Shown one piece after another: positions 5,315 through 48,324 of a DNA stretch of 64,000 bases. The notes under the pieces are model-generated. The model was not told the origin of the DNA. It was given only the letters and a program-made list of their open reading frames with translations, and did not search any database. A program made the position numbers and the translations under genes. The first letter of the stretch is position 1. Each line of letters begins with the position of its first letter. Where the stretch lies: positions 182,769-246,768 of the IMG/VR virus record IMGVR_UViG_3300025161_000004; one strand, written 5' to 3'.

Positions 5315-5350
5315 AAATCAAAAACCCAAGCAAATTGCTTGGGTTTTCTT
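5315..5350 (-). terminator. Attenuator terminator of tRNA operon 1
   Basis: AAAACCCAAGC-AATTT-GCTTGGGTTTTTGATTTT on the minus strand. Confidence 0.85.
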
Positions 5351-5373
5351 ATAATATCCTAATTTGGATTACT

Positions 5374-5457
5374 TTAGGATATGTGTATAGTTTGCCCAAG
5401 CAACAGCTTTTGTAGCTGATGTTTGGGTTGTGGTACTATAAACACATCCATTTTCAT
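5374..5457 (-). CDS. Leader peptide 1 (Pro/Gln/His sensing), 27 aa
   Basis: MKMDVFIVPQPKHQLQKLLLGQTIHIS; contains TTGCTTGGG, complementary to the terminator 5' arm. Confidence 0.85.
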   Translation of the reverse strand: MKMDVFIVPQPKHQLQKLLLGQTIHIS

Positions 5458-10150: not shown

Positions 10151-10555
10151 ATGAATTATTTAAAGGTAGTTTTAACTTTTTTTAAAAAAAATTTAGTTAA
10201 AATAATAACTAAAGTAGTATTATTATTATTGATAGTAATCCATATACATTACAGACATACAACTGGAAAAAAAATAGATCACCTTATAAATTTATACGGT
10301 AAAGTAAAATATGATATAAATAAGTTACCAAATGGACTTGTAATATATAAATCAGAAAAGGCACTAATAGATAAATCAACTGGTATGGTATTTTATGAGA
10401 TCGGAATTTGGGATTATATTAATGATTTTGTGCACTATGTAAGAGTTCCATATTATGCTCATAATCGTTTTAATGTTGGAATGGAAATTAGGGCTAAACA
10501 AAAACAGAAAAATTCAGAAAAGAAAAGAATAAGAAAATCGAAATCATTAATTTAA
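10151..10555 (+). CDS. Hypothetical membrane-anchored protein
   Basis: N-terminal hydrophobic stretch VVLLLLIVIHI. Confidence 0.65.
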   Translation: MNYLKVVLTFFKKNLVKIITKVVLLLLIVIHIHYRHTTGKKIDHLINLYGKVKYDINKLPNGLVIYKSEKALIDKSTGMVFYEIGIWDYINDFVHYVRVPYYAHNRFNVGMEIRAKQKQKNSEKKRIRKSKSLI

Positions 10556-10878
10556 ATAAAAAAATAAACCCTTACAGTAAGCCAATTTATGGTTAATAAC
10601 AGTCATGTTGATATTTTAAGACCCATTATTGATAAAATAAAAAGTTCTGTTAGACCAGAAGAAATTGAAGAAAAAAAACTTTTATTATCCAACCCGATTG
10701 AACTTTTTCAAAAATGGTTAATTTATAATCTAAGGCACTATCCATAGCACCATACATAGCACAAGCAGAATCAAAATGATGTGGAAGTGTACGTTCACTA
10801 TTTGATTGTATGTAAATCATAACTACATTTGCAATGTATTACACGTAAAAGTAGTCAAAAAAAATATTTAAAAAAACT

Positions 10879-10920
10879 TGATAATTAATTAAACCTTTTA
10901 TACTTTTGTAACGTATTTAA
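10879..10920 (+). promoter_or_regulatory. Promoter of tRNA operon 2
   Basis: TACTTTTG at 10901-10908, followed by ACGTATTTA. Confidence 0.7.
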
Positions 10921-10936
10921 GGAAAAACAGAAATTA

Positions 10937-11029
10937 ATGGAAAACTTAATATTAGATATGGCAGTCGTAGCAGAAGCGTTGGTTTTAGACGCTGAGTGGA
11001 ATTGTATTGGGTTTTCTATTAAGAGATAA
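10937..11029 (+). CDS. Leader peptide 2 (Glu/Leu/Asp/Met/Ala/Val/Trp sensing), 30 aa
   Basis: MENLILDMAVVAEALVLDAEWNCIGFSIKR; GGGTTTTCTATT antiterminator segment. Confidence 0.88.
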   Translation: MENLILDMAVVAEALVLDAEWNCIGFSIKR

Positions 11030-11053
11030 TTGAATTTAAAATTATACAAATAG

Positions 11054-11090
11054 AAAACCCGATCACAAAAAAGATCGGGTTTTTTGTTTT
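11054..11090 (+). terminator. Attenuator terminator of tRNA operon 2
   Basis: AAAACCCGATC-ACAAAAAA-GATCGGGTTTTTTGTTTT. Confidence 0.9.
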
Positions 11091-11189
11091 ATAGCTTTTG
11101 TAGATGACAAAAGCAATTTTGAGATATTTGATCTATAGTCACACCCATTTACATGTGCAAAATATGTTCTTTGAAATTTTGTAATATAC

Positions 11190-11261
11190 ACATCTATAGT
11201 TTAATTGGTAAAACGATAGTCTCCAAAACTATAAATTTCAGTTCGAGTCTGAATAGATGTG
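11190..11261 (+). tRNA. tRNA-Trp(CCA)
   Basis: ATAGT-CTCCAAA-ACTAT. Confidence 0.9.
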
Positions 11262-11267
11262 CGAAAT

Positions 11268-11339
11268 GCTCGGTTCGTCTAACGGTTAGGACACATGGTT
11301 TTCAACCATGGAATAGGGGTTCGATTCCCCTATCGAGTA
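11268..11339 (+). tRNA. tRNA-Glu(TTC)
   Basis: CATGG-TTTTCAA-CCATG. Confidence 0.9.
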
Positions 11340-11375
11340 CTTTAAATTCTTTTTTCCTGTTAGGAATTAAGATAT

Positions 11376-11450
11376 GTTGCCGTAGCCAAATGGAATAAGG
11401 CACAACACTTTCAATGTTGTAATGTGTGGGTTCGAGTCCCATCGGCAATA
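11376..11450 (+). tRNA. tRNA-Glu(TTC), second copy
   Basis: CAACA-CTTTCAA-TGTTG. Confidence 0.85.
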
Positions 11451-11464
11451 CGAAAAAAATAAAT

Positions 11465-11539
11465 GCCCTTGTAGCTCAGTAGGTTCAGAGCAACACTCTT
11501 ACAAAGTGAAGGTCATAGGTTCGATTCCTGTCAAGGGCA
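11465..11539 (+). tRNA. tRNA-Val(TAC)
   Basis: CACT-CTTACAA-AGTG; acceptor GCCCTTG/CAAGGGC. Confidence 0.9.
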
Positions 11540-11624
11540 CTTAAAAATATGTTTAAGTTATGAAGAACAATTACAGCTTGGACGCAAGAGAAAATTCTCA
11601 AAAAGATTCGATAGAAACTTTGAA

Positions 11625-11975
11625 TTGTTTTTGAGAATGTATAGAACACAATTAATTACATTCTGTGGTTCTGAAGTAAAAGTTGTGTTTGATGTAAATG
11701 GTCTTGATGGAAAGAATTGTTTCAATAATTATGAAAATGGTTTATATAAACATAAAGAAACAATTGTAACAAGACACCCAAACATTGTAAGAGCTGTAAT
11801 AACATCAAAAAGGGGTTGGGGTCTTTGGGTTGGTGAATGGAGTAGAGGAATTAGTGAAGGGTTATTTAGTAAAGATGACATACTAAATGAGTTTGAAATA
11901 AGAAATATTAAATTACCAGAGTTCTTATTAAAAGAGTTTGATAATTTAATACATAAAAAAAATATGGGGCTATAG
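11625..11975 (+). CDS. Hypothetical protein within the tRNA array
   Basis: 116 aa ORF; start uncertain, possibly frameshifted from ATG 11560; 3' end overlaps tRNA-Ala by 10 nt. Confidence 0.55.
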   Translation: MFLRMYRTQLITFCGSEVKVVFDVNGLDGKNCFNNYENGLYKHKETIVTRHPNIVRAVITSKRGWGLWVGEWSRGISEGLFSKDDILNEFEIRNIKLPEFLLKEFDNLIHKKNMGL

Positions 11976-12038
11976 TTTAATTGGCTAAAATTCCTGACTT
12001 GCACTCAGGGGATCAGGGTTCAAGTCCCTGTAGCTCCA
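11966..12038 (+). tRNA. tRNA-Ala(TGC)
   Basis: CCTGA-CTTGCAC-TCAGG; GGGGCTA/TAGCTCC with G3-U70. Confidence 0.92.
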
Positions 12039-12104
12039 CTGTTCTTTACCATAGGTAGGTAAAGTACAAAGGCTTTATAACGTTGTACCCACAACGTTTA
12101 TAAC

Positions 12105-12175
12105 GTGAATGTGGTGTAATGGATTGCATATGATACTGTCACTATCAAGGTTGGGGTTCGAGTCCCCCATTCACG
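12105..12175 (+). tRNA. tRNA-Asp(GTC), short or imperfect T stem
   Basis: TGATA-CTGTCAC-TATCA. Confidence 0.75.
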
Positions 12176-12272
12176 GCAAAAACTGGTACTAATACCGAAC
12201 TGACTGCAATCAAAGTAGGTAAAAGTAAAGGTTACTTTAATTGAAATCGTTGCAGCAATAGAAATTAAAGTT

Positions 12273-12340
12273 TAGCTATAGGTGTATTGGTGCATATTCT
12301 GCGTTGAGCTGAAATGGAAAGTTCGAATTTTTATAGCTAG
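12273..12340 (+). pseudogene. Degenerate tRNA-like element
   Basis: TAGCTAT/ATAGCTA acceptor and GTTCGAAT loop; anticodon arm mismatched, no U33. Confidence 0.45.
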
Positions 12341-12348
12341 CAAAATAT

Positions 12349-12422
12349 AGTGCGTTGGTGTAGTGGTCTAACATGCTTGCCTGTCACGCAAGAGATCATG
12401 AGTTCAAATCCCATACGCACTG
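12349..12422 (+). tRNA. tRNA-Asp(GTC)
   Basis: CTTGC-CTGTCAC-GCAAG. Confidence 0.9.
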
Positions 12423-12433
12423 CAAAAATTATT

Positions 12434-12508
12434 GGTCTATTGGGGTTATGGGTATGCTTCCAAACTGTCACTTTGGAGAAACGGGTTCGAGTCCCGTATA
12501 GACCGCCA
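12434..12508 (+). tRNA. tRNA-Asp(GTC), CCA encoded
   Basis: CCAAA-CTGTCAC-TTTGG. Confidence 0.85.
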
Positions 12509-12539
12509 AAAATTATTAATAGTAAAATGGGTGAATGTT

Positions 12540-12743
12540 ATGTATATCGAGATTGTAAGAAGTGTGGGGTTGAGATATATCCGTTTGTTTCCAAAATTGT
12601 TAAATCGTTATCACAGTGATAATGATATGACAATTATAAGACTAATTAGTAATGAGATTATTAATAATAAAGAAATCACTGGTGTAATTAATAAGAAAGA
12701 ATTAGAGAAAGAAATACAAAAAACATTAGAAATAAAGAAATGA
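12540..12743 (+). CDS. Small hypothetical protein
   Basis: ATG 12540, just after the tRNA, in the frame of the predicted ORF. Confidence 0.4.
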   Translation: MYIEIVRSVGLRYIRLFPKLLNRYHSDNDMTIIRLISNEIINNKEITGVINKKELEKEIQKTLEIKK

Positions 12744-12857
12744 GAAATCATAACATATATAGTGAACGATTATACTACCAATAGTAGCGATTAGTTACTG
12801 TCAACAATAGCTTTTAAATTTTGAAAGTCTTTACTGTTATAAAATAAATTAAAGTCA

Positions 12858-13012
12858 TAAAATATAAAATCACTAAAGAAAAATTAGAATTAGTTGTTGA
12901 AAAATCATTATTTTTTTCAGATATTTGTAAAGATTTAAATATTAGATTTGTTGGCATAAATTATAAAAGTGTTAAATCAAAATTAAAAGAATATAATATT
13001 AATACTGATTTA
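12858..13012 (+). pseudogene. Remnant resembling the N-terminus of an HNH endonuclease
   Basis: Frame KYKITKEKLELVVEKSLFFSDICKDLNIRFVGINYKSVKSKLKEYNINTD with no start; resemblance judged from memory. Confidence 0.35.
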
Positions 13013-13123
13013 ATACAGATCTATTGAATCATGGAAATAGATTTAGAACTTTCGGATTAAATAAATGAGAATCATTAAAAATTTATATTAGTGTTTATCT
13101 GAAAAAAAAAGAAAAGCATAAAT

Positions 13124-13209
13124 GCCTCTGTGGTGAAATCGGTAGACACGCTACACTTAAGATGTAGTTCTCATTAATGGGAGTACAGGTTCGAGTCCTG
13201 TCAGAGGTA
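13124..13209 (+). tRNA. tRNA-Leu(TAA)
   Basis: CTACA-CTTAAGA-TGTAG; long variable arm. Confidence 0.92.
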
Positions 13210-13327
13210 CAAACTAAATTAAAATGCCTTGTGAAAAAAGAAAGTTACATTGAATGAAAGATTGAAACATTAAGAAAAGAATTAACAAACATTAAATAGT
13301 GTAGTATTTATAAGAAATTATAATACT

Positions 13328-13558
13328 ATGAAAAAAGTGATTGAATTTGTATTAAATCCACTAAAAATGCTTGCTCTTTGCGGTGTTTGTTTTGGTGTGG
13401 CATTCGTTGATTCGTTGATTCATGATGCATCATCTATGGCTGATTTGTCAATTGTTGGTAAAATATTTACTGGTATATTTATGGTTGGCTTTACCATATT
13501 AGTTATTAGATATTTATTGTTACCATTATATTATTGGTTAATCAGTTTGGTTCAATAA
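13328..13558 (+). CDS. Small membrane protein
   Basis: Two hydrophobic segments. Confidence 0.65.
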   Translation: MKKVIEFVLNPLKMLALCGVCFGVAFVDSLIHDASSMADLSIVGKIFTGIFMVGFTILVIRYLLLPLYYWLISLVQ

Positions 13559-13567
13559 AAACCAGAA

Positions 13568-13649
13568 GCACCAATGATGGAACTGGTAGTCATGCTTGTC
13601 TCAAAAGCAAGTGTCGAAAGACGTGTAGGTTCGAGTCCTACTTGGGGTA
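13568..13649 (+). tRNA. tRNA-Leu(CAA)
   Basis: CTTGT-CTCAAAA-GCAAG; variable arm GTCGAAAGAC. Confidence 0.88.
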
Positions 13650-13702
13650 CTAAACAGCATTTGACAAACATATTTTAAATGCTTATTTTGAACACATCCT
13701 AA

Positions 13703-13984
13703 TTGCTTCGGTTGCAATTATGGATTATGAACTCTAATAGTAGAGAAAATGACAAAAGATGGGTAATTCCAAGTCTTGATGTAAGACTGCCTCAACCATC
13801 TCAAGTCATAAACCGAGAACCCATCCGTTACTGGATGGTCGAACTAACCCTTACGAGTGGTGATGTTCAGAATTTTTATGTGAAGGCAAAAACATCAATT
13901 GATGCATTGGTAAAAGCAAACGAACTAAAAAATCGTTTTGAAATACCAAGACTTCGAAAACGTAAATTAATCTTAGTTGATTAA
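13703..13984 (+). CDS. Hypothetical protein (start uncertain)
   Basis: ORF track; true start may be the later ATG (MVELTLTSG). Confidence 0.5.
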   Translation: MLRLQLWIMNSNSRENDKRWVIPSLDVRLPQPSQVINREPIRYWMVELTLTSGDVQNFYVKAKTSIDALVKANELKNRFEIPRLRKRKLILVD

Positions 13985-14021
13985 TTTCCCTTGCACAATT
14001 CCCTGTTTTAACAGGGAACAT

Positions 14022-14093
14022 GGCGATATAGTATAATGGGTATTACATCTCCCTCATAAAGAGAAGATTGCAGTTCGATTCTGCATGTCGCTA
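14022..14093 (+). tRNA. tRNA-Met(CAT), elongator; lysidine Ile2 not excluded
   Basis: TCTCC-CTCATAA-AGAGA. Confidence 0.8.
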
Positions 14094-14236
14094 CTAACTA
14101 CTAATTGGAAAGTTGAATACCATTCTATTTTAAACGCTATGTAACTAATTTTTATTTAGAAATCACTTGACAAGTATTTATTATTAAGCTATATTTATAG
14201 CTTAATAATAATATCTTATTCAAAATCTTAAATCAG

Positions 14237-15034
14237 ATGTCCAAAAAGAAGGTAACAAAAACAGTCACAACAACAATTACCGAAGAAATTGTTGAAAATC
14301 AATCAAACAAAACACATATCGTATGTATCCTTGATAGATCTGGATCAATGGGTTTAGTAGCACAAGATGCTATTGGTGGGTTCAACAGATTTTTAAAAGA
14401 TCAAAAAGAAACAGAAGGTGAAGCAACAATGAGCGTAACTTTATTTGATGATGAATATACTCCACTCTATGATGGTAAAGCTATCCCATTAAAAGAAGTT
14501 CCTGAGTTAGATGAGAAGACATTTATACCAAGAGGTGCTACTGCCCTGTATGATGCTATTGGTAGAACGATAGCAAGAACCAAAGAAGATTTTGATAAGA
14601 TGACACCTTCAGAAAAACCAGATAAGGTCTTAGTAGTTATTGTCACTGATGGTAAAGAAAATTCTTCTAAAGAATATAATCAAAATCAAATTAAAGATTT
14701 AATCACTGACTTGAAGAAAAAGAACTGGCAGTTTATTTTCTTGTGTTCGACTGAAGATGCATTAACAAGAGCGAATTCTATTGGAATTGGTTATGGAAAT
14801 GCATTTAAATTTACTAATACATCTGCTGGTAATAATGTTCTTTATACTAGTGTTATCAATAACGCAACTAAGTTATATAGAAGTTTGACTACAAATAATT
14901 CAGAATATGATGTAATATCTAATAATATTATTTCATATGCCATATCTAATGTTAGTCATGTTGATCATATCAACACAAATTCTGAGTCAAATGAATCAAC
15001 AACTAATACTTATAGTACTCCACAAAAAGTATAG
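14237..15034 (+). CDS. vWA-domain protein
   Basis: ILDRSGSM MIDAS motif; TALYDAIG; VIVTDGKEN. Confidence 0.9.
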   Translation: MSKKKVTKTVTTTITEEIVENQSNKTHIVCILDRSGSMGLVAQDAIGGFNRFLKDQKETEGEATMSVTLFDDEYTPLYDGKAIPLKEVPELDEKTFIPRGATALYDAIGRTIARTKEDFDKMTPSEKPDKVLVVIVTDGKENSSKEYNQNQIKDLITDLKKKNWQFIFLCSTEDALTRANSIGIGYGNAFKFTNTSAGNNVLYTSVINNATKLYRSLTTNNSEYDVISNNIISYAISNVSHVDHINTNSESNESTTNTYSTPQKV

Positions 15035-15121: not shown

Positions 15122-15865
15122 ATGGGAAAAAAAAGAATTATTTCTATTGGTGATATTCACGGAAGAACCTTTTGGAAGTCCATTAACATCATTGAATATG
15201 ATTATATTATATTTGTTGGTGACTATGTAGATTCGACCATATATGGTAATGAGCAAATATTAACTAATTTACTTGACATTATTGAATTAAAGAAAACTTA
15301 CCTAGATAAGGTAATACTATTATTAGGTAATCACGATATCCAATACATGTTTTTGAATGAAGGTTATGAATGTAGCGGTTACAGACCATCAATGGCATCA
15401 ACACTGAATCATATATTTACAGATAATAAAGAACTATTTCAAATGGCATTTCAGATAAACAATTATATCTGGACACATGCTGGTATTTCTGAAAAGTGGT
15501 ATAACCTTAATAAGGATGAAATCGATATTTTTTCTGATAAATTTAATTGTAAGAATTTATCCGACATATTTAATAGGATGATGTATACTAAAGAAAATAA
15601 ATTATTGCATCAGGTCGGAAAATTGCGTGGTGGTCTTTATCCTGCTGGTGGTATTACTTGGGCAGATCGTAATGAAACAAAATATGCATATCTTGTGGGT
15701 TATCATCAGATAGTAGGTCATACATCAATAGATGGAATTGAAAGATTTGGTGATGATAATAGTTCAATAACATATATTGATTGTCAATATAAGCTAGAGA
15801 ATTTAGAAAATTTTGACGATATTCGATTAGAAGACTATTTTTTAGTACTTGATTTGGCTGAATAA
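15122..15865 (+). CDS. Calcineurin-like metallophosphoesterase
   Basis: GDIHG, GDYVD, GNHD, HAG and GHT motifs. Confidence 0.9.
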   Translation: MGKKRIISIGDIHGRTFWKSINIIEYDYIIFVGDYVDSTIYGNEQILTNLLDIIELKKTYLDKVILLLGNHDIQYMFLNEGYECSGYRPSMASTLNHIFTDNKELFQMAFQINNYIWTHAGISEKWYNLNKDEIDIFSDKFNCKNLSDIFNRMMYTKENKLLHQVGKLRGGLYPAGGITWADRNETKYAYLVGYHQIVGHTSIDGIERFGDDNSSITYIDCQYKLENLENFDDIRLEDYFLVLDLAE

Positions 15866-16058
15866 CTAAATCTAAATATATTTCGTATAATATTATTTAA
15901 AACCGTTTTTTTTTGTGTGTGATTTCGGATAAAATCATATTAGAATTGAATTTATTGTGGAAACTATTACTGATTTTAATCCGTAAAAATATAAAAAAAT
16001 TTAACTAGAAGAAAAGACATATATCATTATAGAAATTAAAATAAAAACTAGAGCAAAA

Positions 16059-17114
16059 GTGAAATTAAATAATGATATATTGAATAAATTGATTGATGAT
16101 GGTTATGTTATGGTTAATAATCATCCATCTCTACCTTTAAGAATTTATAATTATACTCGCAAAACTCAGTTTGAAAAATATTGGAACGAATATACATTAT
16201 TATGTCGTGGACTTATTCTTGATCATGATTTAAATGTTATCGCTAGACCTTTCATGAAGTTCTTCAATTATGAAGAACATAAACCAGAAGAAATTCCAAA
16301 TACAAATTTTGAAGTCTATGAAAAGGTAGATGGTTCATTGGGTATTATATTTAATTATGCAAATGAATGGCATATTGCCACCAGAGGTTCATTTGTATCA
16401 GAACAAGCTATTAGAGCTAAATCAATGCTTAGCAGATATAATATCGATGGTTTAGATTCTGAAAAGACTTATTTGGTTGAAATTATCTATCCAGAAAATC
16501 GTATTGTTGTTGATTATTTTGGTGAAGAAAAATTAGTGTTGTTAGCTGTTGTTGACATTAAAACAGGACATGATATGCCATATTCACATATGAAATATCA
16601 TACCTATATGCGTAAAATAGATTTCCCATTAATTAAATATTATGATGGTATTAATGATATTTTTGAATTAAGCAAACGTAACAATCAAAATGAAGAGGGT
16701 TACGTGTTAAGATATGAAAATGGATTTCGTGTAAAAATTAAATTTGAGAATTATTGTCGTCTACATGCAATCATTACCAATCTATCAACTAAAGATATTT
16801 GGAAATATTTACGTGATGGTAAAGATATTAATGAATTGCTTGATCGCACACCAGATGAATTTGATGATTGGGTAAGAAATGAAATGAAGTCATTAACTGA
16901 CAGGTATTTGGCAATTGAATCTGAAGCAAAATTAATATTTTCTAAAATTTATGTGGATGGTATGTCAAGAAAAGATTTTGCAATGAAAGCATTGAATGAA
17001 AATCATTCACCAATTTTATTTAAGATATTAGAAAATAAACCATATGATAGTATTATATGGAAAATGATTGAACCAAAATATTCAAAAGCATTCTTTAAAG
17101 AAGAAGGTAATTAG
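16059..17114 (+). CDS. rnlA: T4 Rnl1-like RNA ligase
   Basis: CRGLI, ARPFMKFFN, EKVDGS (motif I), ATRGSF, EGYV, RVKIK. Confidence 0.88.
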   Translation: MKLNNDILNKLIDDGYVMVNNHPSLPLRIYNYTRKTQFEKYWNEYTLLCRGLILDHDLNVIARPFMKFFNYEEHKPEEIPNTNFEVYEKVDGSLGIIFNYANEWHIATRGSFVSEQAIRAKSMLSRYNIDGLDSEKTYLVEIIYPENRIVVDYFGEEKLVLLAVVDIKTGHDMPYSHMKYHTYMRKIDFPLIKYYDGINDIFELSKRNNQNEEGYVLRYENGFRVKIKFENYCRLHAIITNLSTKDIWKYLRDGKDINELLDRTPDEFDDWVRNEMKSLTDRYLAIESEAKLIFSKIYVDGMSRKDFAMKALNENHSPILFKILENKPYDSIIWKMIEPKYSKAFFKEEGN

Positions 17115-32599: not shown

Positions 32600-32668
32600 A
32601 TGATAACTATTAAGAAATATTATTATAAAAAGTCTTCAAAAGTGAAGATCAGTAATACTATATCTTAA
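32600..32668 (+). CDS. Leader peptide 3 (Lys/Tyr sensing), 22 aa
   Basis: MITIKKYYYKKSSKVKISNTIS; GTGAAGATCAG antiterminator segment. Confidence 0.9.
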   Translation: MITIKKYYYKKSSKVKISNTIS

Positions 32669-32685
32669 CAGTAATATAAAAAAAT

Positions 32686-32728
32686 AAAAACCCTGATCTT
32701 CACAAAAAGATCAGGGTTTTTATTTTTT
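32686..32728 (+). terminator. Attenuator terminator of tRNA operon 3
   Basis: AAAAACCCTGATCTT-CACAAA-AAGATCAGGGTTTTTATTTTTT, abutting tRNA-Tyr. Confidence 0.92.
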
Positions 32729-32812
32729 GGGAGTGCGCTAACGTTGGAGTGTTAGGCTTGTCTGTAAAACAAGTGCCTGTTGGCTTAGTAGGTTCGAATC
32801 CTACCACTCCCA
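32729..32812 (+). tRNA. tRNA-Tyr(GTA)
   Basis: CTTGT-CTGTAAA-ACAAG; long variable arm. Confidence 0.9.
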
Positions 32813-32906: not shown

Positions 32907-32993
32907 CCCCTCTTAGCTCTAATTGGCGAGTCGAAAGACGAGAGCTTCTGACTTTTAATCAGAAGGTTGCTGGTTCGAATCCAGCAGAGGGGA
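32907..32993 (+). tRNA. tRNA-Lys(TTT) with expanded D loop
   Basis: TCTGA-CTTTTAA-TCAGA; 22-nt D loop containing a GTC-GAAA-GAC hairpin. Confidence 0.85.
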
Positions 32994-33404
32994 CAAAAAA
33001 AATATTTTTTATTATAATTATCTTTGATAACCATTGTAAGACATATAGTATTTTATACCAGTTCTTATTTACGTAAAAGTTATATAGTATTGAATATTAT
33101 TCAAATTAATGTGTTTTAGTGTTTAGCTTTTTTATTTATATTTGTACTTATAGAAATAAGTTATTATGAATAAAGTGATTGAAAAAGCAAAAACGATAAT
33201 TATATCATTAATTTCATATGAGGTTGCAAGTAAAAAATTTGGTTTTAGATTATATTCTAAAAAGTTTATCGATAATCAAGTTAATCGATACACCCATATC
33301 TAAAGGGATGATTATATTATTTTTTTCGTGTCTTGAATTATCTAATATATTCAATTGACAAATTGAAACTACTGATATATATTTGTTTTTTTAGTTTAAA
33401 ATCT

Positions 33405-39387: not shown

Positions 39388-39465
39388 ATGAAAAATATAA
39401 TCACAATTACCCAAATTACAAGGATAAGAGGTACAAAAACCTCAAGTAATGGGTTTATTGTGTGA
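39388..39465 (+). CDS. Leader peptide 4 (Ile/Thr/Arg sensing), 25 aa
   Basis: MKNIITITQITRIRGTKTSSNGFIV; GGGTTTATTGTGT antiterminator segment. Confidence 0.88.
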   Translation: MKNIITITQITRIRGTKTSSNGFIV

Positions 39466-39493
39466 AATTTTTTAGTTAATATCTTTAACACAT

Positions 39494-39524
39494 AAACCCG
39501 ATAAAAAATCGGGTTTTTTTGTTT
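39494..39524 (+). terminator. Attenuator terminator of tRNA operon 4
   Basis: AAACCCGAT-AAAAA-ATCGGGTTTTTTTGTTT. Confidence 0.88.
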
Positions 39525-39631: not shown

Positions 39632-39716
39632 GCTTGGGTCGCATAGAGGTCGATTGCGCCTGACTTGTAATCAGGAGAGTTTATACTCCACGTGGGTTCG
39701 AATCCCACCTCAAGCT
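39632..39716 (+). tRNA. tRNA-Thr(TGT) with long variable arm
   Basis: CCTGA-CTTGTAA-TCAGG; 16-nt variable region. Confidence 0.85.
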
Positions 39717-39721
39717 CATTT

Positions 39722-42338: not shown

Positions 42339-42458
42339 ATGAAATTTTTAAATCTAAATAATAATCCTTCGAACCTGAATAGTAATTTTATATCAGGGAA
42401 TATTTTTCTTGGTACTTGTCAAGAGAAGTCGGGTTATTCTTTAGATTTTGGTGGATGA
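42339..42458 (+). CDS. Leader peptide 5 (Phe/Leu/Asn/Ser/Ile/Gly/Cys sensing), 39 aa
   Basis: MKFLNLNNNPSNLNSNFISGNIFLGTCQEKSGYSLDFGG; GTCGGGTTATTCTT antiterminator segment. Confidence 0.88.
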   Translation: MKFLNLNNNPSNLNSNFISGNIFLGTCQEKSGYSLDFGG

Positions 42459-42485
42459 TAAACTAAAACAACTAAAGAAATCAAG

Positions 42486-42516
42486 AAAACCCGACACAAA
42501 AGTCGGGTTTTTTATT
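42486..42516 (+). terminator. Attenuator terminator of tRNA operon 5
   Basis: AAAACCCGAC-ACAAAA-GTCGGGTTTTTTATT. Confidence 0.9.
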
Positions 42517-43039: not shown

Positions 43040-43110
43040 GCCCGAATGGTGTAAATAGTAGCATACTTGCTACGCAGCAAGAGGTGTTGGTTCAAGTCCA
43101 ACTTCGGGCC
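43040..43110 (+). pseudogene. Atypical tRNA with a 6-nt anticodon loop (Arg ACG-like)
   Basis: CTTGC-TACGCA-GCAAG; D loop lacks GG; acceptor and T stems intact. Confidence 0.5.
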
Positions 43111-43573: not shown

Positions 43574-43664
43574 TCTGGTGTAGCTGATGTGGTTTTAGCT
43601 GCGGACTGTTAATCCGTGAATGAAATATATTGAAATAAAGTAGGTTCGAGTCCTACCACCAGAG
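43574..43664 (+). tRNA. tRNA-Asn(GTT) with a 22-nt variable region
   Basis: GCGGA-CTGTTAA-TCCGT; G73. Confidence 0.82.
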
Positions 43665-43665
43665 C

Positions 43666-47690: not shown

Positions 47691-47764
47691 GTAACCAAGA
47701 TGATTAAATTTTCGTATAATACAACAAATACGATCCATTAGCATAGTGGTTAATGTAGGACTCT
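47691..47764 (+). repeat. Second copy of the direct repeat (intact tRNA 5' half)
   Basis: See 45964-46036. Confidence 0.85.
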
Positions 47765-47803
47765 CTAAAAGTCTTGAGGTGGGTTCGATTCCCACATGGA
47801 TCA
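47732..47803 (+). tRNA. Amber suppressor tRNA(CTA)
   Basis: GATCCAT/ATGGATC acceptor; GGACT-CTCTAAA-AGTCT; GTGGG-TTCGATT-CCCAC. Confidence 0.88.
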
Positions 47804-47932
47804 CAAAAATTTATTAAATATGATCTTAAAGATATATCACAACACCAATCGGAAGGTTGAATATGAACTGTGGGCTGTGGTGTTTTTATTTAAAAATCAT
47901 AAAAAATAACTTAACAATTTGAAACTTTTTAA

Positions 47933-47970: not shown

Positions 47971-48324
47971 ATGAAAAGGTAGATATCTAAACTAATTACT
48001 ATAACCAGACAGGATTTACCTATTGGTTATCAAATTGCACAATGCTGCCATTCTGTTGCAGATTTTGCGTACTATCAACCAGAATTATTTAAATATTGGA
48101 GAGAAAATTCTAACTATAAAATATGTCTCTCTGTTAAAGACGAACAATCTCTAATCAAACTTCATAAAAAACTTATTGATAAAGGCGCACAAGTTGTCGC
48201 ATTTATTGAACCTGATTTACAAAATCAAATGACGGCAATTACCTTCTATGGTACTCCTGAGTATCAGAAAGTAACATCATATCTACCACTTGCAGGCAAA
48301 CAATTAAACCATAATATACTATGA
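47971..48324 (+). CDS. Pth2-like peptidyl-tRNA hydrolase with in-frame TAG at codon 4 (missed by the ORF track)
   Basis: ATG AAA AGG TAG ATA...; readthrough gives 117 aa with TRQDL..GYQIAQ..HS...W...K..LSVKDE..L...F.EPDL.NQ.TAI...YLPL. Confidence 0.8.

Follow-up and report, generated by a model that had tools for sequence, protein, structure and literature searches.

What controls the expression of the tRNA arrays that huge phages carry? This question was raised by a locus in an uncultured huge phage (IMG/VR record IMGVR_UViG_3300025161_000004), in which a 30-codon ORF and a strong predicted terminator precede eleven tRNA genes, and the codons of the ORF are those that the downstream tRNAs read. 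We examined a stretch of 64,000 nucleotides of this record (positions 182,769 to 246,768, hereafter the window, whose own numbering is used below), in which the first-pass annotation had proposed that a single leader integrates seven tRNA pools over an operon of about 3 kb. Our analyses confirmed the observation and support in silico the interpretation that the locus is a leader-peptide attenuator, so that the phage probably makes these tRNAs only when ribosomes run short of them.

The leader ORF, on the plus strand, runs from an ATG at 10937 to a TAA at 11027-11029. Of codons 2-21, which we refer to as the sensor codons, 18 encode E, L, D, M, A, V or W, the exceptions being AAC (codon 3) and ATA (codon 5). 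The Leu codons are three TTA and one TTG, with no CTN, and the only TGG is at 10997-10999, the first gene of the array being tRNA-Trp (11190-11262). This codon composition is unlikely to be due to chance. Among 409 ATG-initiated ORFs of at least 21 codons in the six frames of the window (18,896 windows of 20 codons), this ORF is the single maximum for this codon set, with 18 codons compared to 15 in the next best and a mode of 6. Over the whole ORF, 18 of 29 non-start codons are cognate to the array, a 1.96-fold enrichment relative to the codon usage of long ORFs (binomial p = 7e-4).

The array itself, also on the plus strand, was identified with ARAGORN and the Rfam tRNA model. It begins with tRNA-Trp(CCA), Glu(UUC), Glu(UUC) and Val(UAC) at 11190-11540 (61-70 bits), continues with tRNA-Ala(UGC) and three tRNA-Asp(GUC) at 11966-12508, and then has tRNA-Leu(UAA) at 13124-13210, tRNA-Leu(CAA) at 13568-13650 and tRNA-Met(CAU) at 14022-14094. 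The tRNA-Met is elongator-like, as it lacks the three G-C pairs of initiator anticodon stems. Interspersed among the tRNA genes are small ORFs with no known family, at 11637-11975 (112 aa), 12537-12743 (68 aa from the ATG), 13328-13558 (76 aa, hydrophobic) and 13727-13984 (85 aa). Whether the array is a single operon remains open. No plus-strand terminator was found between 11090 and 15066. However, a possible internal promoter or start region (GTATTTA...TATAAT) lies at 13304-13327, in a stretch that is conserved in a relative while the sequence upstream of it is not, and this element could give ORF 13328, tRNA-Leu(CAA) and tRNA-Met a promoter of their own, freeing these distal tRNAs from the attenuator.

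Upstream of the leader there is a promoter-like site at 10878-10908 (+), consisting of TTG, a 20-nt spacer and TACTTTTG, in a Bacteroidota-type -33/-7 layout. Its function is inferred. In this window there are four further leaders (A, C, D and E, described below; the present leader and its class in relatives are referred to as B). The same TTG-N19/20-TAnnTTTG layout was found upstream of leaders A, C and E and of B-class leaders in relatives. Adjacent to the promoter-like site, at 10911-10919 (+), is the motif ACGTATTTA, which occurs four times in the window compared to 1.06 expected, three of the copies being at leaders; CGTATTTA holds the same place in 10 of 13 B-class relatives. The GTATTTA core is enriched 12-75 nt upstream of ordinary ORFs (15 of 37 against 1.6 expected), indicating that leaders share the gene-start motif of ordinary phage genes. 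No Shine-Dalgarno sequence precedes the leader, which is expected if the host is a member of the Bacteroidota, although that host assignment is itself inferred.

The RNA of the leader region can adopt alternative pairings between four segments of the plus strand. Segment 1 (10934-10952) covers the start codon, segment 2 (11004-11022) comprises ORF codons 23-29, segment 3 (11048-11064) is the 5' arm of the terminator, and segment 4 (11073-11092) is the 3' arm plus the T tract. The terminator (11048-11089) has 17 pairs followed by a T run, with a hairpin energy of -20.5 kcal/mol. Within segment 2, GGGTTTTCTATT (11009-11020) is a perfect reverse complement of AATAGAAAACCC (11049-11060) in segment 3, and the duplex between the 3' end of the ORF and the 5' arm of the terminator is -19.2 kcal/mol, compared to -4.6 +/- 2.3 for 300 random segments of the window. 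The 181-nt leader folds with z = -7.0 against dinucleotide shuffles, and in the minimum free energy structure of 10920-11100 segment 2 is paired with segment 1 (duplex -19.1 kcal/mol against -8.8 +/- 2.3 for controls, p 0.003). This 1:2 pairing is strong here and in some B-class relatives, but it is not a general feature of the family (8/64 units at p <= 0.05). Segment 2 lies 5-23 nt upstream of the stop codon, so a terminating ribosome would cover most of it. Constrained folds gave the antiterminator when a ribosome was placed at codons 3-20, and masked it when the ribosome was at the stop codon.

Is this arrangement unique to one array? All five tRNA arrays in the window were found to have the same design. 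Attenuator A, at 5323-5457 on the minus strand, has its leader at 5374-5457 and terminator at 5323-5345, ahead of Pro, Pro, Gln, His and Gln tRNAs (8/26 codons cognate, 4.0x, p 6e-4). The other three are on the plus strand. Attenuator C (32600-32725) has its leader at 32600-32668 and terminator at 32682-32725, ahead of tRNA-Tyr (32729-32812) and a probable tRNA-Lys (32907-32994) (9/21 codons, 2.9x). Attenuator D (39388-39516) has its leader at 39388-39465 and terminator at 39494-39516, ahead of Thr, Arg, Arg and Ile tRNAs (11/24 codons, 3.1x). Attenuator E (42339-42511) has its leader at 42339-42458 and terminator at 42486-42511, ahead of Phe, Ile(UAU), Ser, Gly, Gly, Ser, Asn, Leu(UAG), Leu(AAG) and Cys tRNAs (27/38 codons, 2.3x, p 4e-7). 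The resulting 5x5 matrix of leaders by arrays is strictly diagonal: own-array enrichment for A to E is 4.0, 2.0, 2.9, 3.1 and 2.3x (p from 2e-3 to 4e-7), and all 20 off-diagonal cells are at or below 1.3x. The first-pass annotation had noted that CTN codons sit in leaders 1 and 5 (A and E here), and this requires a correction. The CTN codons of leader A lie in its antiterminator arm, and its array has no Leu tRNA; only leader E precedes Leu(UAG) and Leu(AAG) tRNAs.

About 70 distinct units of this kind were found in related huge phages, probably of Bacteroidota. Of the leaders tested, 46/46 distinct leaders are enriched for the codons of their own array (median 2.1x), whereas the same DNA read in frames +1 and +2 gives 0.59x and 0.93x (Wilcoxon 3.5e-9). 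In addition, 23 of 24 codon families are more frequent in leaders whose array carries the matching tRNA. The exception is Met (0.5x), and as the Met sensor of the present leader also rests on one internal ATG, the proposal of seven sensed amino acids is weak for Met, while D, E, V, L(UUR), A and W are solid. A short ORF ending 10-50 nt upstream was found at 63/67 strong terminators in front of arrays of at least 3 tRNAs, compared to 71/479 other terminators. In 65/72 units the 3' end of the ORF pairs with the 5' arm of the terminator better than 95% of random segments, with a median duplex of -12.8 kcal/mol, against -4.8 for random segments and -3.4 for the 5' end of the ORF. The paired sequences differ from unit to unit yet stay complementary. 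Many of the units are homologous, so these counts overstate the number of independent events, and the independent support comes from about seven compositional classes.

For the B class specifically, a relative at 74-75% protein identity (L002) has a homologous leader (L002:5187-5297) in which the promoter-like site is almost invariant, the sensor core and terminator are kept, and the antiterminator has two compensatory pair changes (CTAT/ATAG to CTGA/TCAG). The sensor core of 42 nt is identical between the window and L002 even at synonymous sites, which codon identity alone does not require, and some extra RNA-level constraint is therefore likely. More distant relatives carry D/E/V/L/A/W-rich leaders ahead of Asp-Glu-Val-Leu-Ala-Trp arrays, and the array of the relative L073 lacks tRNA-Ala, its leader having a single Ala codon. 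A search of IMG/VR with the RNA motif alone returned 28 loci, of which 27 are followed by Asp-first tRNA arrays and about 24 have this class of leader. As further support, not specific to this class, the published 634.8-kb phage LR745206.1 has a 15-codon leader with seven Gln codons and a -19 kcal/mol terminator ahead of three tRNA-Gln genes. In contrast, the tRNA cluster of T4, which served as a negative control, gave no unit with the same pipeline.

Overall, we consider that the data are best explained, with good though not complete confidence, by ribosome-mediated transcription attenuation gating a phage tRNA array; translation of the leader, stalling, read-through and the physiological trigger are all inferred from sequence. 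In this model, transcription starts at a host-type promoter at about 10878-10908 and the leader is translated while the RNA is being made. If any aminoacyl-tRNA for Glu, Leu(UUR), Asp, Ala, Val or Trp (perhaps Met) is limiting, the ribosome lingers in codons 2-21, and segment 2 is free to pair with segment 3 as it emerges, so that the terminator cannot form and RNA polymerase runs on into the tRNA genes. If all supplies are good, the ribosome reaches the UAA at 11027 and covers segment 2, segments 3 and 4 fold into the terminator, and transcription stops at about 11090. If no ribosome loads, segments 1:2 and 3:4 form, and the default state is off. The leader would therefore work as an OR gate over six or seven codon families, closing a negative feedback loop between decoding capacity and the supply of exactly the tRNAs that restore it. 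One difficulty is that in several sister units segment 2 lies 18-30 nt upstream of the stop codon, outside the footprint of a terminating ribosome, and for those units the off state rests on kinetics that we could not model. Possible triggers are a mismatch between the host tRNA pool and the AT-rich phage codons, loss of host tRNA during infection, or cleavage by host anticodon nucleases.

Other explanations were considered less likely. The same device could report amino-acid starvation or general translation stress of the host, as biosynthetic attenuators do, with the match to the downstream tRNAs serving another purpose, such as timing. Stalling depends on aminoacyl-tRNA, so sequence cannot separate charging from abundance, and the predicted structures fit either signal. 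We regard this as possible but unlikely, as making more tRNA does not relieve amino-acid starvation, and the one-to-one partition of codon families among the five leaders and their own arrays, and its tracking across phages, is what a supply loop predicts and a general stress sensor does not need. Opposite polarity, in which efficient translation keeps a ribosome close behind RNA polymerase and suppresses termination, so that good decoding gives more tRNA and stalling terminates, is more doubtful still. Coupling-type control of this kind appears to exist (the pyrBI type), and in some sister units a terminating ribosome would not cover segment 2. However, stop codons lie 13-47 nt upstream of the terminator stem (19 nt here), too far for a terminating ribosome to melt it, a conserved, co-varying antiterminator segment within the 3' end of the ORF has no role in such a model, and the constrained folds gave the antiterminator with an early-stalled ribosome.

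It is also very unlikely that the leader RNA binds tRNAs or a protein directly, in a T-box-like manner, with the ORF being incidental. Alternative helices alone could work as a riboswitch, and the conservation of the sensor core at synonymous sites could be read in this way, but the codon match holds only in the frame of the ORF, an ATG-to-stop ORF is present in 63/67 units, and no single binding site could specify up to ten tRNA species. Only tRNA models passed Rfam gathering scores in the window, and a permissive scan of 10850-11200 gave no T-box hit or other family match. Least likely of all is coincidence, that is, that the ORF encodes an ordinary small (amphipathic or membrane) peptide and the hairpin is simply the terminator of an upstream transcription unit. 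The peptide is hydrophobic and acidic and could look like a small helix, and gene callers did predict it once. This reading is strongly disfavored by the diagonal matrix in 5 of 5 cases, the enrichment in 46/46 leaders, the 27/28 motif-only loci linked to tRNA arrays, and the promoter-like site directly upstream of the leader.

The closest known systems are the leader-peptide attenuators of amino-acid operons (E. coli trp, his, leu and thr), some of which sense more than one amino acid (Ile, Val and Leu by ilvGMEDA; Thr and Ile by thr). These have a short translated leader with regulatory codons, an intrinsic terminator, and an antiterminator that shares the 5' arm of the terminator, and a 1:2 helix is also predicted in the present unit, although it is not a general feature of the family. 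Here, however, the regulated genes are tRNAs rather than biosynthetic enzymes, the sensor codons mirror the anticodons encoded downstream, six to ten codon families are sensed per leader, and the element belongs to a virus and occurs as a set of five that partitions the genetic code. There is no sequence relationship, as Rfam Trp_leader scores 16 bits against a gathering score of 41. The pheST attenuator of E. coli likewise appears to control a component of the decoding apparatus, phenylalanyl-tRNA synthetase, in response to decoding of its own codons, but it is cellular, acts on a synthetase rather than tRNAs, and senses one amino acid. T-box riboswitches link the state of a specific tRNA to read-through of a terminator by way of a competing antiterminator, but they bind uncharged tRNA directly through a specifier codon and need no translation, whereas the signal here is frame-dependent. 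Known phage tRNA clusters, such as that of T4, are also interspersed with small ORFs and have tRNA-repair enzymes nearby; an Rnl1-type RNA ligase lies at 16110-17114 here. We found no description of such control of tRNA genes in the literature searched.

A broader hypothesis, which we consider somewhat more likely than not, is that a whole clade of huge phages, probably infecting Bacteroidota, runs a demand-driven tRNA economy, in which every tRNA array sits behind its own leader-peptide attenuator. The set of leaders together would monitor decoding capacity across nearly the whole genetic code and would switch on only the arrays that are needed. This could also act as a built-in alarm for host tRNA depletion or anticodon-nuclease defense, and a phosphoesterase and a PTH2 peptidyl-tRNA hydrolase are encoded nearby, in addition to the RNA ligase.

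The design gives a rule for finding short regulatory ORFs in front of tRNA arrays in huge-phage genomes, including the unannotated record LR745206.1, and it offers compact, composable sensors of specific tRNA pools for engineering. It would extend classical attenuation from metabolism to the translation apparatus of a virus. Why large phages carry tRNA arrays is debated (codon-usage matching, host tRNA decay, escape from anticodon nucleases), and how the arrays are regulated is largely unknown. Each leader's codon list states which tRNAs the phage treats as limiting in its host, which makes the question of why phages carry tRNAs open to experiment, and a leader that reads out the availability of exactly the tRNAs encoded behind it would be the first direct feedback from decoding capacity to tRNA gene transcription of which we are aware.

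The window, which is part of the 246,768 bp IMG/VR contig IMGVR_UViG_3300025161_000004, has 28.8% G+C and carries 35 tRNAs identified by ARAGORN. Within it we found, in order, a promoter-like site, TTG-N20-TACTTTTG, at 10878-10908, the motif ACGTATTTA at 10911-10919, a 30-codon ORF at 10937-11029, and a 17-pair terminator with a T run at 11048-11089. After 100 nt these are followed by eleven plus-strand tRNA genes from 11190 to 14094 (Trp, Glu, Glu, Val, Ala, Asp, Asp, Asp, Leu(UAA), Leu(CAA), and Met), among which lie four small ORFs of unknown family, for which Pfam and PHROGs found nothing. Every sequence detail given in the first-pass annotation is correct, including that 18 of 20 sensor codons are read by the downstream tRNAs, that Leu is encoded only by TTA and TTG, that a single TGG is the last sensor codon, and that 11009-11020 and 11049-11060 are complementary at 12/12 positions. 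A scan for the sigma-70 consensus was uninformative in this AT-rich DNA (39 sites found, 38 expected).

These features are more than would be expected by chance. Among 409 ATG-ORFs in six frames (18,896 windows of 20 codons), the leader ORF is the single maximum for codons read by the tRNAs of the array, with 18, whereas the next best has 15 and the mode is 6. The leader RNA also folds far better than shuffled sequences (z = -7.0), and the fold has four segments, in which segment 1 (10934-10952, over the start codon) pairs with segment 2 (11004-11022) and segment 3 (11048-11064) pairs with segment 4 (11073-11089). Segment 2 can instead pair with segment 3, and that duplex is -19.2 kcal/mol, in comparison to -4.6 +/- 2.3 for random segments. 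To assess the effect of a ribosome on these alternatives, we masked a ribosome footprint and folded the RNA as it exists before segment 4 is made. The 2:3 antiterminator forms when the ribosome is at codons 3-20 and is largely masked when the ribosome is at the stop codon.

The same design precedes every multi-tRNA array in the window. In addition to the leader described here (leader B), leader A (5374-5457, minus strand; whole unit with its terminator, 5323-5457) precedes tRNAs for Pro, Pro, Gln, His, and Gln, and leader C (32600-32668; unit 32600-32725) precedes Tyr and a probable Lys. Leader D (39388-39465; unit 39388-39516) precedes Thr, Arg, Arg, and Ile, and leader E (42339-42458; unit 42339-42511) precedes Phe, Ile(UAU), Ser, Gly, Gly, Ser, Asn, Leu(UAG), Leu(AAG), and Cys. 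The leader-by-array codon matrix is strictly diagonal, as own-array enrichment is 4.0, 2.0, 2.9, 3.1, and 2.3x for A to E, with binomial p from 2e-3 to 4e-7, and all 20 off-diagonal cells are at or below 1.3x. Together the five arrays cover every sense codon except CGG, and they are sorted roughly by codon type, with C-starting codons (Pro, Gln, His) in A, mostly G-starting codons (Glu, Asp, Val, Ala) in B, Tyr and Lys in C, and A- and T-starting codons in D and E.

Some of the tRNA genes in the window are unusual. In array C, ARAGORN missed a tRNA-Tyr(GUA) with a long variable arm at 32729-32812 that Rfam finds, and it typed 32907-32994 as Leu(GAG). The latter gene has a CUUUUAA anticodon loop and reads better as Lys(UUU) with an insertion of about 14 nt in the D-loop, an assignment also indicated by its orthologue in the related locus L058, and Lys would otherwise be the only amino acid with no tRNA here. 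Among the genes at 39632-39717, 43574-43665, and 43040-43110 are Thr(UGU) and Asn(GUU) tRNAs with long variable arms (86 and 92 nt) and one tRNA-like gene with a two-base “anticodon” call. A suppressor-type tRNA with the anticodon CUA (typed “Pyl”) at 47732-47804 lies 170 nt upstream of a PTH2 peptidyl-tRNA hydrolase gene at 47971-48324 (Pfam E = 3.5e-9 for 47983-48321). The only upstream ATG of that gene (47971) is followed by an in-frame TAG at 47980, which suggests TAG read-through or recoding. Just downstream of the tRNA array behind leader B, at 15122-17114, are a calcineurin-like phosphoesterase and a T4 Rnl1-type RNA ligase (PF09511), a pairing typical of tRNA repair after anticodon-nuclease attack.

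Megablast of 10500-14500 against GenBank phages gave no match, and searches of IMG/VR anchored on the neighboring 839-aa and 265-aa proteins, or with a back-translated pattern of the sensor peptide, found only the source contig and one relative. An exact look-up of the leader peptides found singletons without names, and the tRNA-Trp gene was too divergent, even between the two close relatives, to be of use in searching. The relative, IMGVR_UViG_3300032103_000260, has neighboring proteins 74-75% identical to those of the window. It keeps the promoter-like site, leader, and terminator at 88% column identity, with a 42-nt identical sensor core, and its antiterminator shows two compensatory pair changes, CTAT/ATAG to CTGA/TCAG. 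The sensor core is conserved even at synonymous sites, which suggests an added RNA constraint. The array of this relative holds the same tRNA set in a different order, and its leader A homologue has K-to-Q and L-to-P replacements that add sensed codons.

To sample the wider family, we fetched 80 IMG/VR loci from phage contigs of up to 675 kb using the ribonucleotide reductase (RNR) as an anchor, and 27 more using a 148-aa protein. A fixed pipeline was applied to all of them: ARAGORN, then identification of a hairpin plus T run no more than 260 nt upstream of a tRNA, and then of the ATG-ORF that ends just before that hairpin. This gave 46 distinct leaders in the first set, all 46 of which are enriched for the codons of their own array (median 2.1x), whereas the same DNA read in frames +1 and +2 gives 0.59x and 0.93x (Wilcoxon 3.5e-9). 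Of 24 codon families, 23 are more frequent in leaders whose array carries the matching tRNA. The exception is Met, and in relatives lone tRNA-Met(CAU) genes have a terminator upstream but no leader ORF (loci L020:1704-1735, L043:2734-2758, and L065:2917-2950), which fits that result. Such an ORF was found for 63/67 strong terminators in front of arrays of at least 3 tRNAs, against 71/479 other terminators. In 65/72 distinct units the 3' end of the ORF is complementary to the 5' arm of the terminator beyond 95% of random segments, and the paired sequences differ between units and change together. The 1:2 helix, although strong in the unit described here, was not significant across the family and is not claimed as a family feature, and in several sister units segment 2 lies outside the footprint of a terminating ribosome.

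The leaders fall into recurring compositional classes, each matched to its array: Tyr/Lys; Thr/Cys/Asn/Ile/Ser/Phe/Gly; Pro/Gln/His; Asp/Glu/Val/Leu/Ala/Trp; Thr/Arg/Ile; Pro/Asp; and Gln alone. The Asp/Glu/Val/Leu/Ala/Trp class, to which leader B belongs, is widespread. In most members the ORF ends GTC GGG TAA, in which the GTCGGG copies the 3' arm of the terminator, and an early CTCGAC mimics its 5' arm. A search of IMG/VR with this RNA motif alone returned 28 loci, 27 of which are followed by Asp-first tRNA arrays and about 24 of which have a leader of this class. The array in locus L073 lacks tRNA-Ala, and its leader has a single Ala codon. Many leaders of this class (in loci L090, L093, L095, L098, L103, L107, L110, and L111) carry CCTCCTTTCT-like sequence, which resembles the 3' end of 16S rRNA, in the spacer between the leader stop and the terminator. 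This sequence is unpaired in the predicted folds, its role is unexplained, and it is absent from the window's own leader.

A unit was also identified in a published genome, the 634.8-kb LR745206.1 (RNR 68% identical, record unannotated), which has a 15-codon leader with seven Gln codons, plus a terminator, ahead of three tRNA-Gln genes. In contrast, phage T4, used as a negative control, gave no unit with the same pipeline, and LR756500.1 and MT835965.1 have no tRNAs near their RNR genes. A contig filed under a “Candidatus Paceibacterota” MAG (JBAZIW010000001.1, 362,763 bp) has the same length as IMG/VR phage contig 3300029288_000055 and carries the same tRNA arrays with leaders, and so is probably a mis-binned huge-phage genome. 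We infer that the hosts are Bacteroidota, based on the TTG-N19/20-TAnnTTTG layout of the promoters and the absence of a Shine-Dalgarno sequence from the leaders, on the identity of about 64-65% between the phage RNR and chromosomal RNRs of Flavobacteriaceae and Bacteroidales, and on the next-closest phage hits being crAss-like and Bacteroides phages. The 79 Bacteroidota chromosomal RNR loci examined held only a few single tRNAs and no unit, but these loci say nothing about host tRNA operons.

The first-pass annotation had proposed that one leader integrates seven tRNA pools over an operon of about 3 kb. Our data support the underlying attenuator reading in silico, with caveats on Met, which is not supported as a sensed input, and on the extent of the operon. 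No plus-strand terminator was found between 11090 and 15066, and our own scan flagged only a weak hairpin at 13470-13509 (-8 kcal/mol). However, the distal Leu(CAA) and Met tRNAs may also have their own promoter, as one copy of the motif GTATTTA, at 13304, is conserved in the relative. GTATTTA occurs no more often than chance overall in the window (37 sites, e.g., 684, 4069, 6865, 13304, 14174, 21863, 27330, and 31995), but 15 of the 37 copies lie 12-75 nt upstream of ORFs of at least 70 aa on the same strand (1.6 expected, p 1e-11), and 5 more lie upstream of the leaders. The motif is associated with gene starts and is probably part of the phage's promoters or 5' regions. Its position relative to the TAnnTTTG box differs between leader B and leaders A, C, D, and E.

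In this interpretation the element works like the trp, his, leu, thr, and ilv attenuators, and like the pheST attenuator, and it has the short ORF, matched regulatory codons, intrinsic terminator, and antiterminator of that class. It is not a T-box, and Rfam gave no known leader or T-box. It differs from those attenuators in that its target is tRNA genes, the number of codon families per leader is larger, it is carried by a virus, and it is deployed as a set that partitions the code. We found no report of leader-peptide control of tRNA genes in the literature searched, although that literature was incomplete and prior description cannot be excluded.

The best explanation of these data is classical ribosome-mediated attenuation, in which translation of the leader, stalling, read-through, and the natural trigger are inferred. 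Slow decoding of any sensor codon would leave segment 2 free to capture segment 3, so that the polymerase reads through into the tRNA genes, whereas fast decoding would bring the ribosome onto segment 2 at the stop codon, and the terminator would form. With no translation, 1:2 and 3:4 would form, so the default would be off. Because the regulated genes are the tRNAs that read the sensor codons, the loop would be a negative feedback on decoding capacity.
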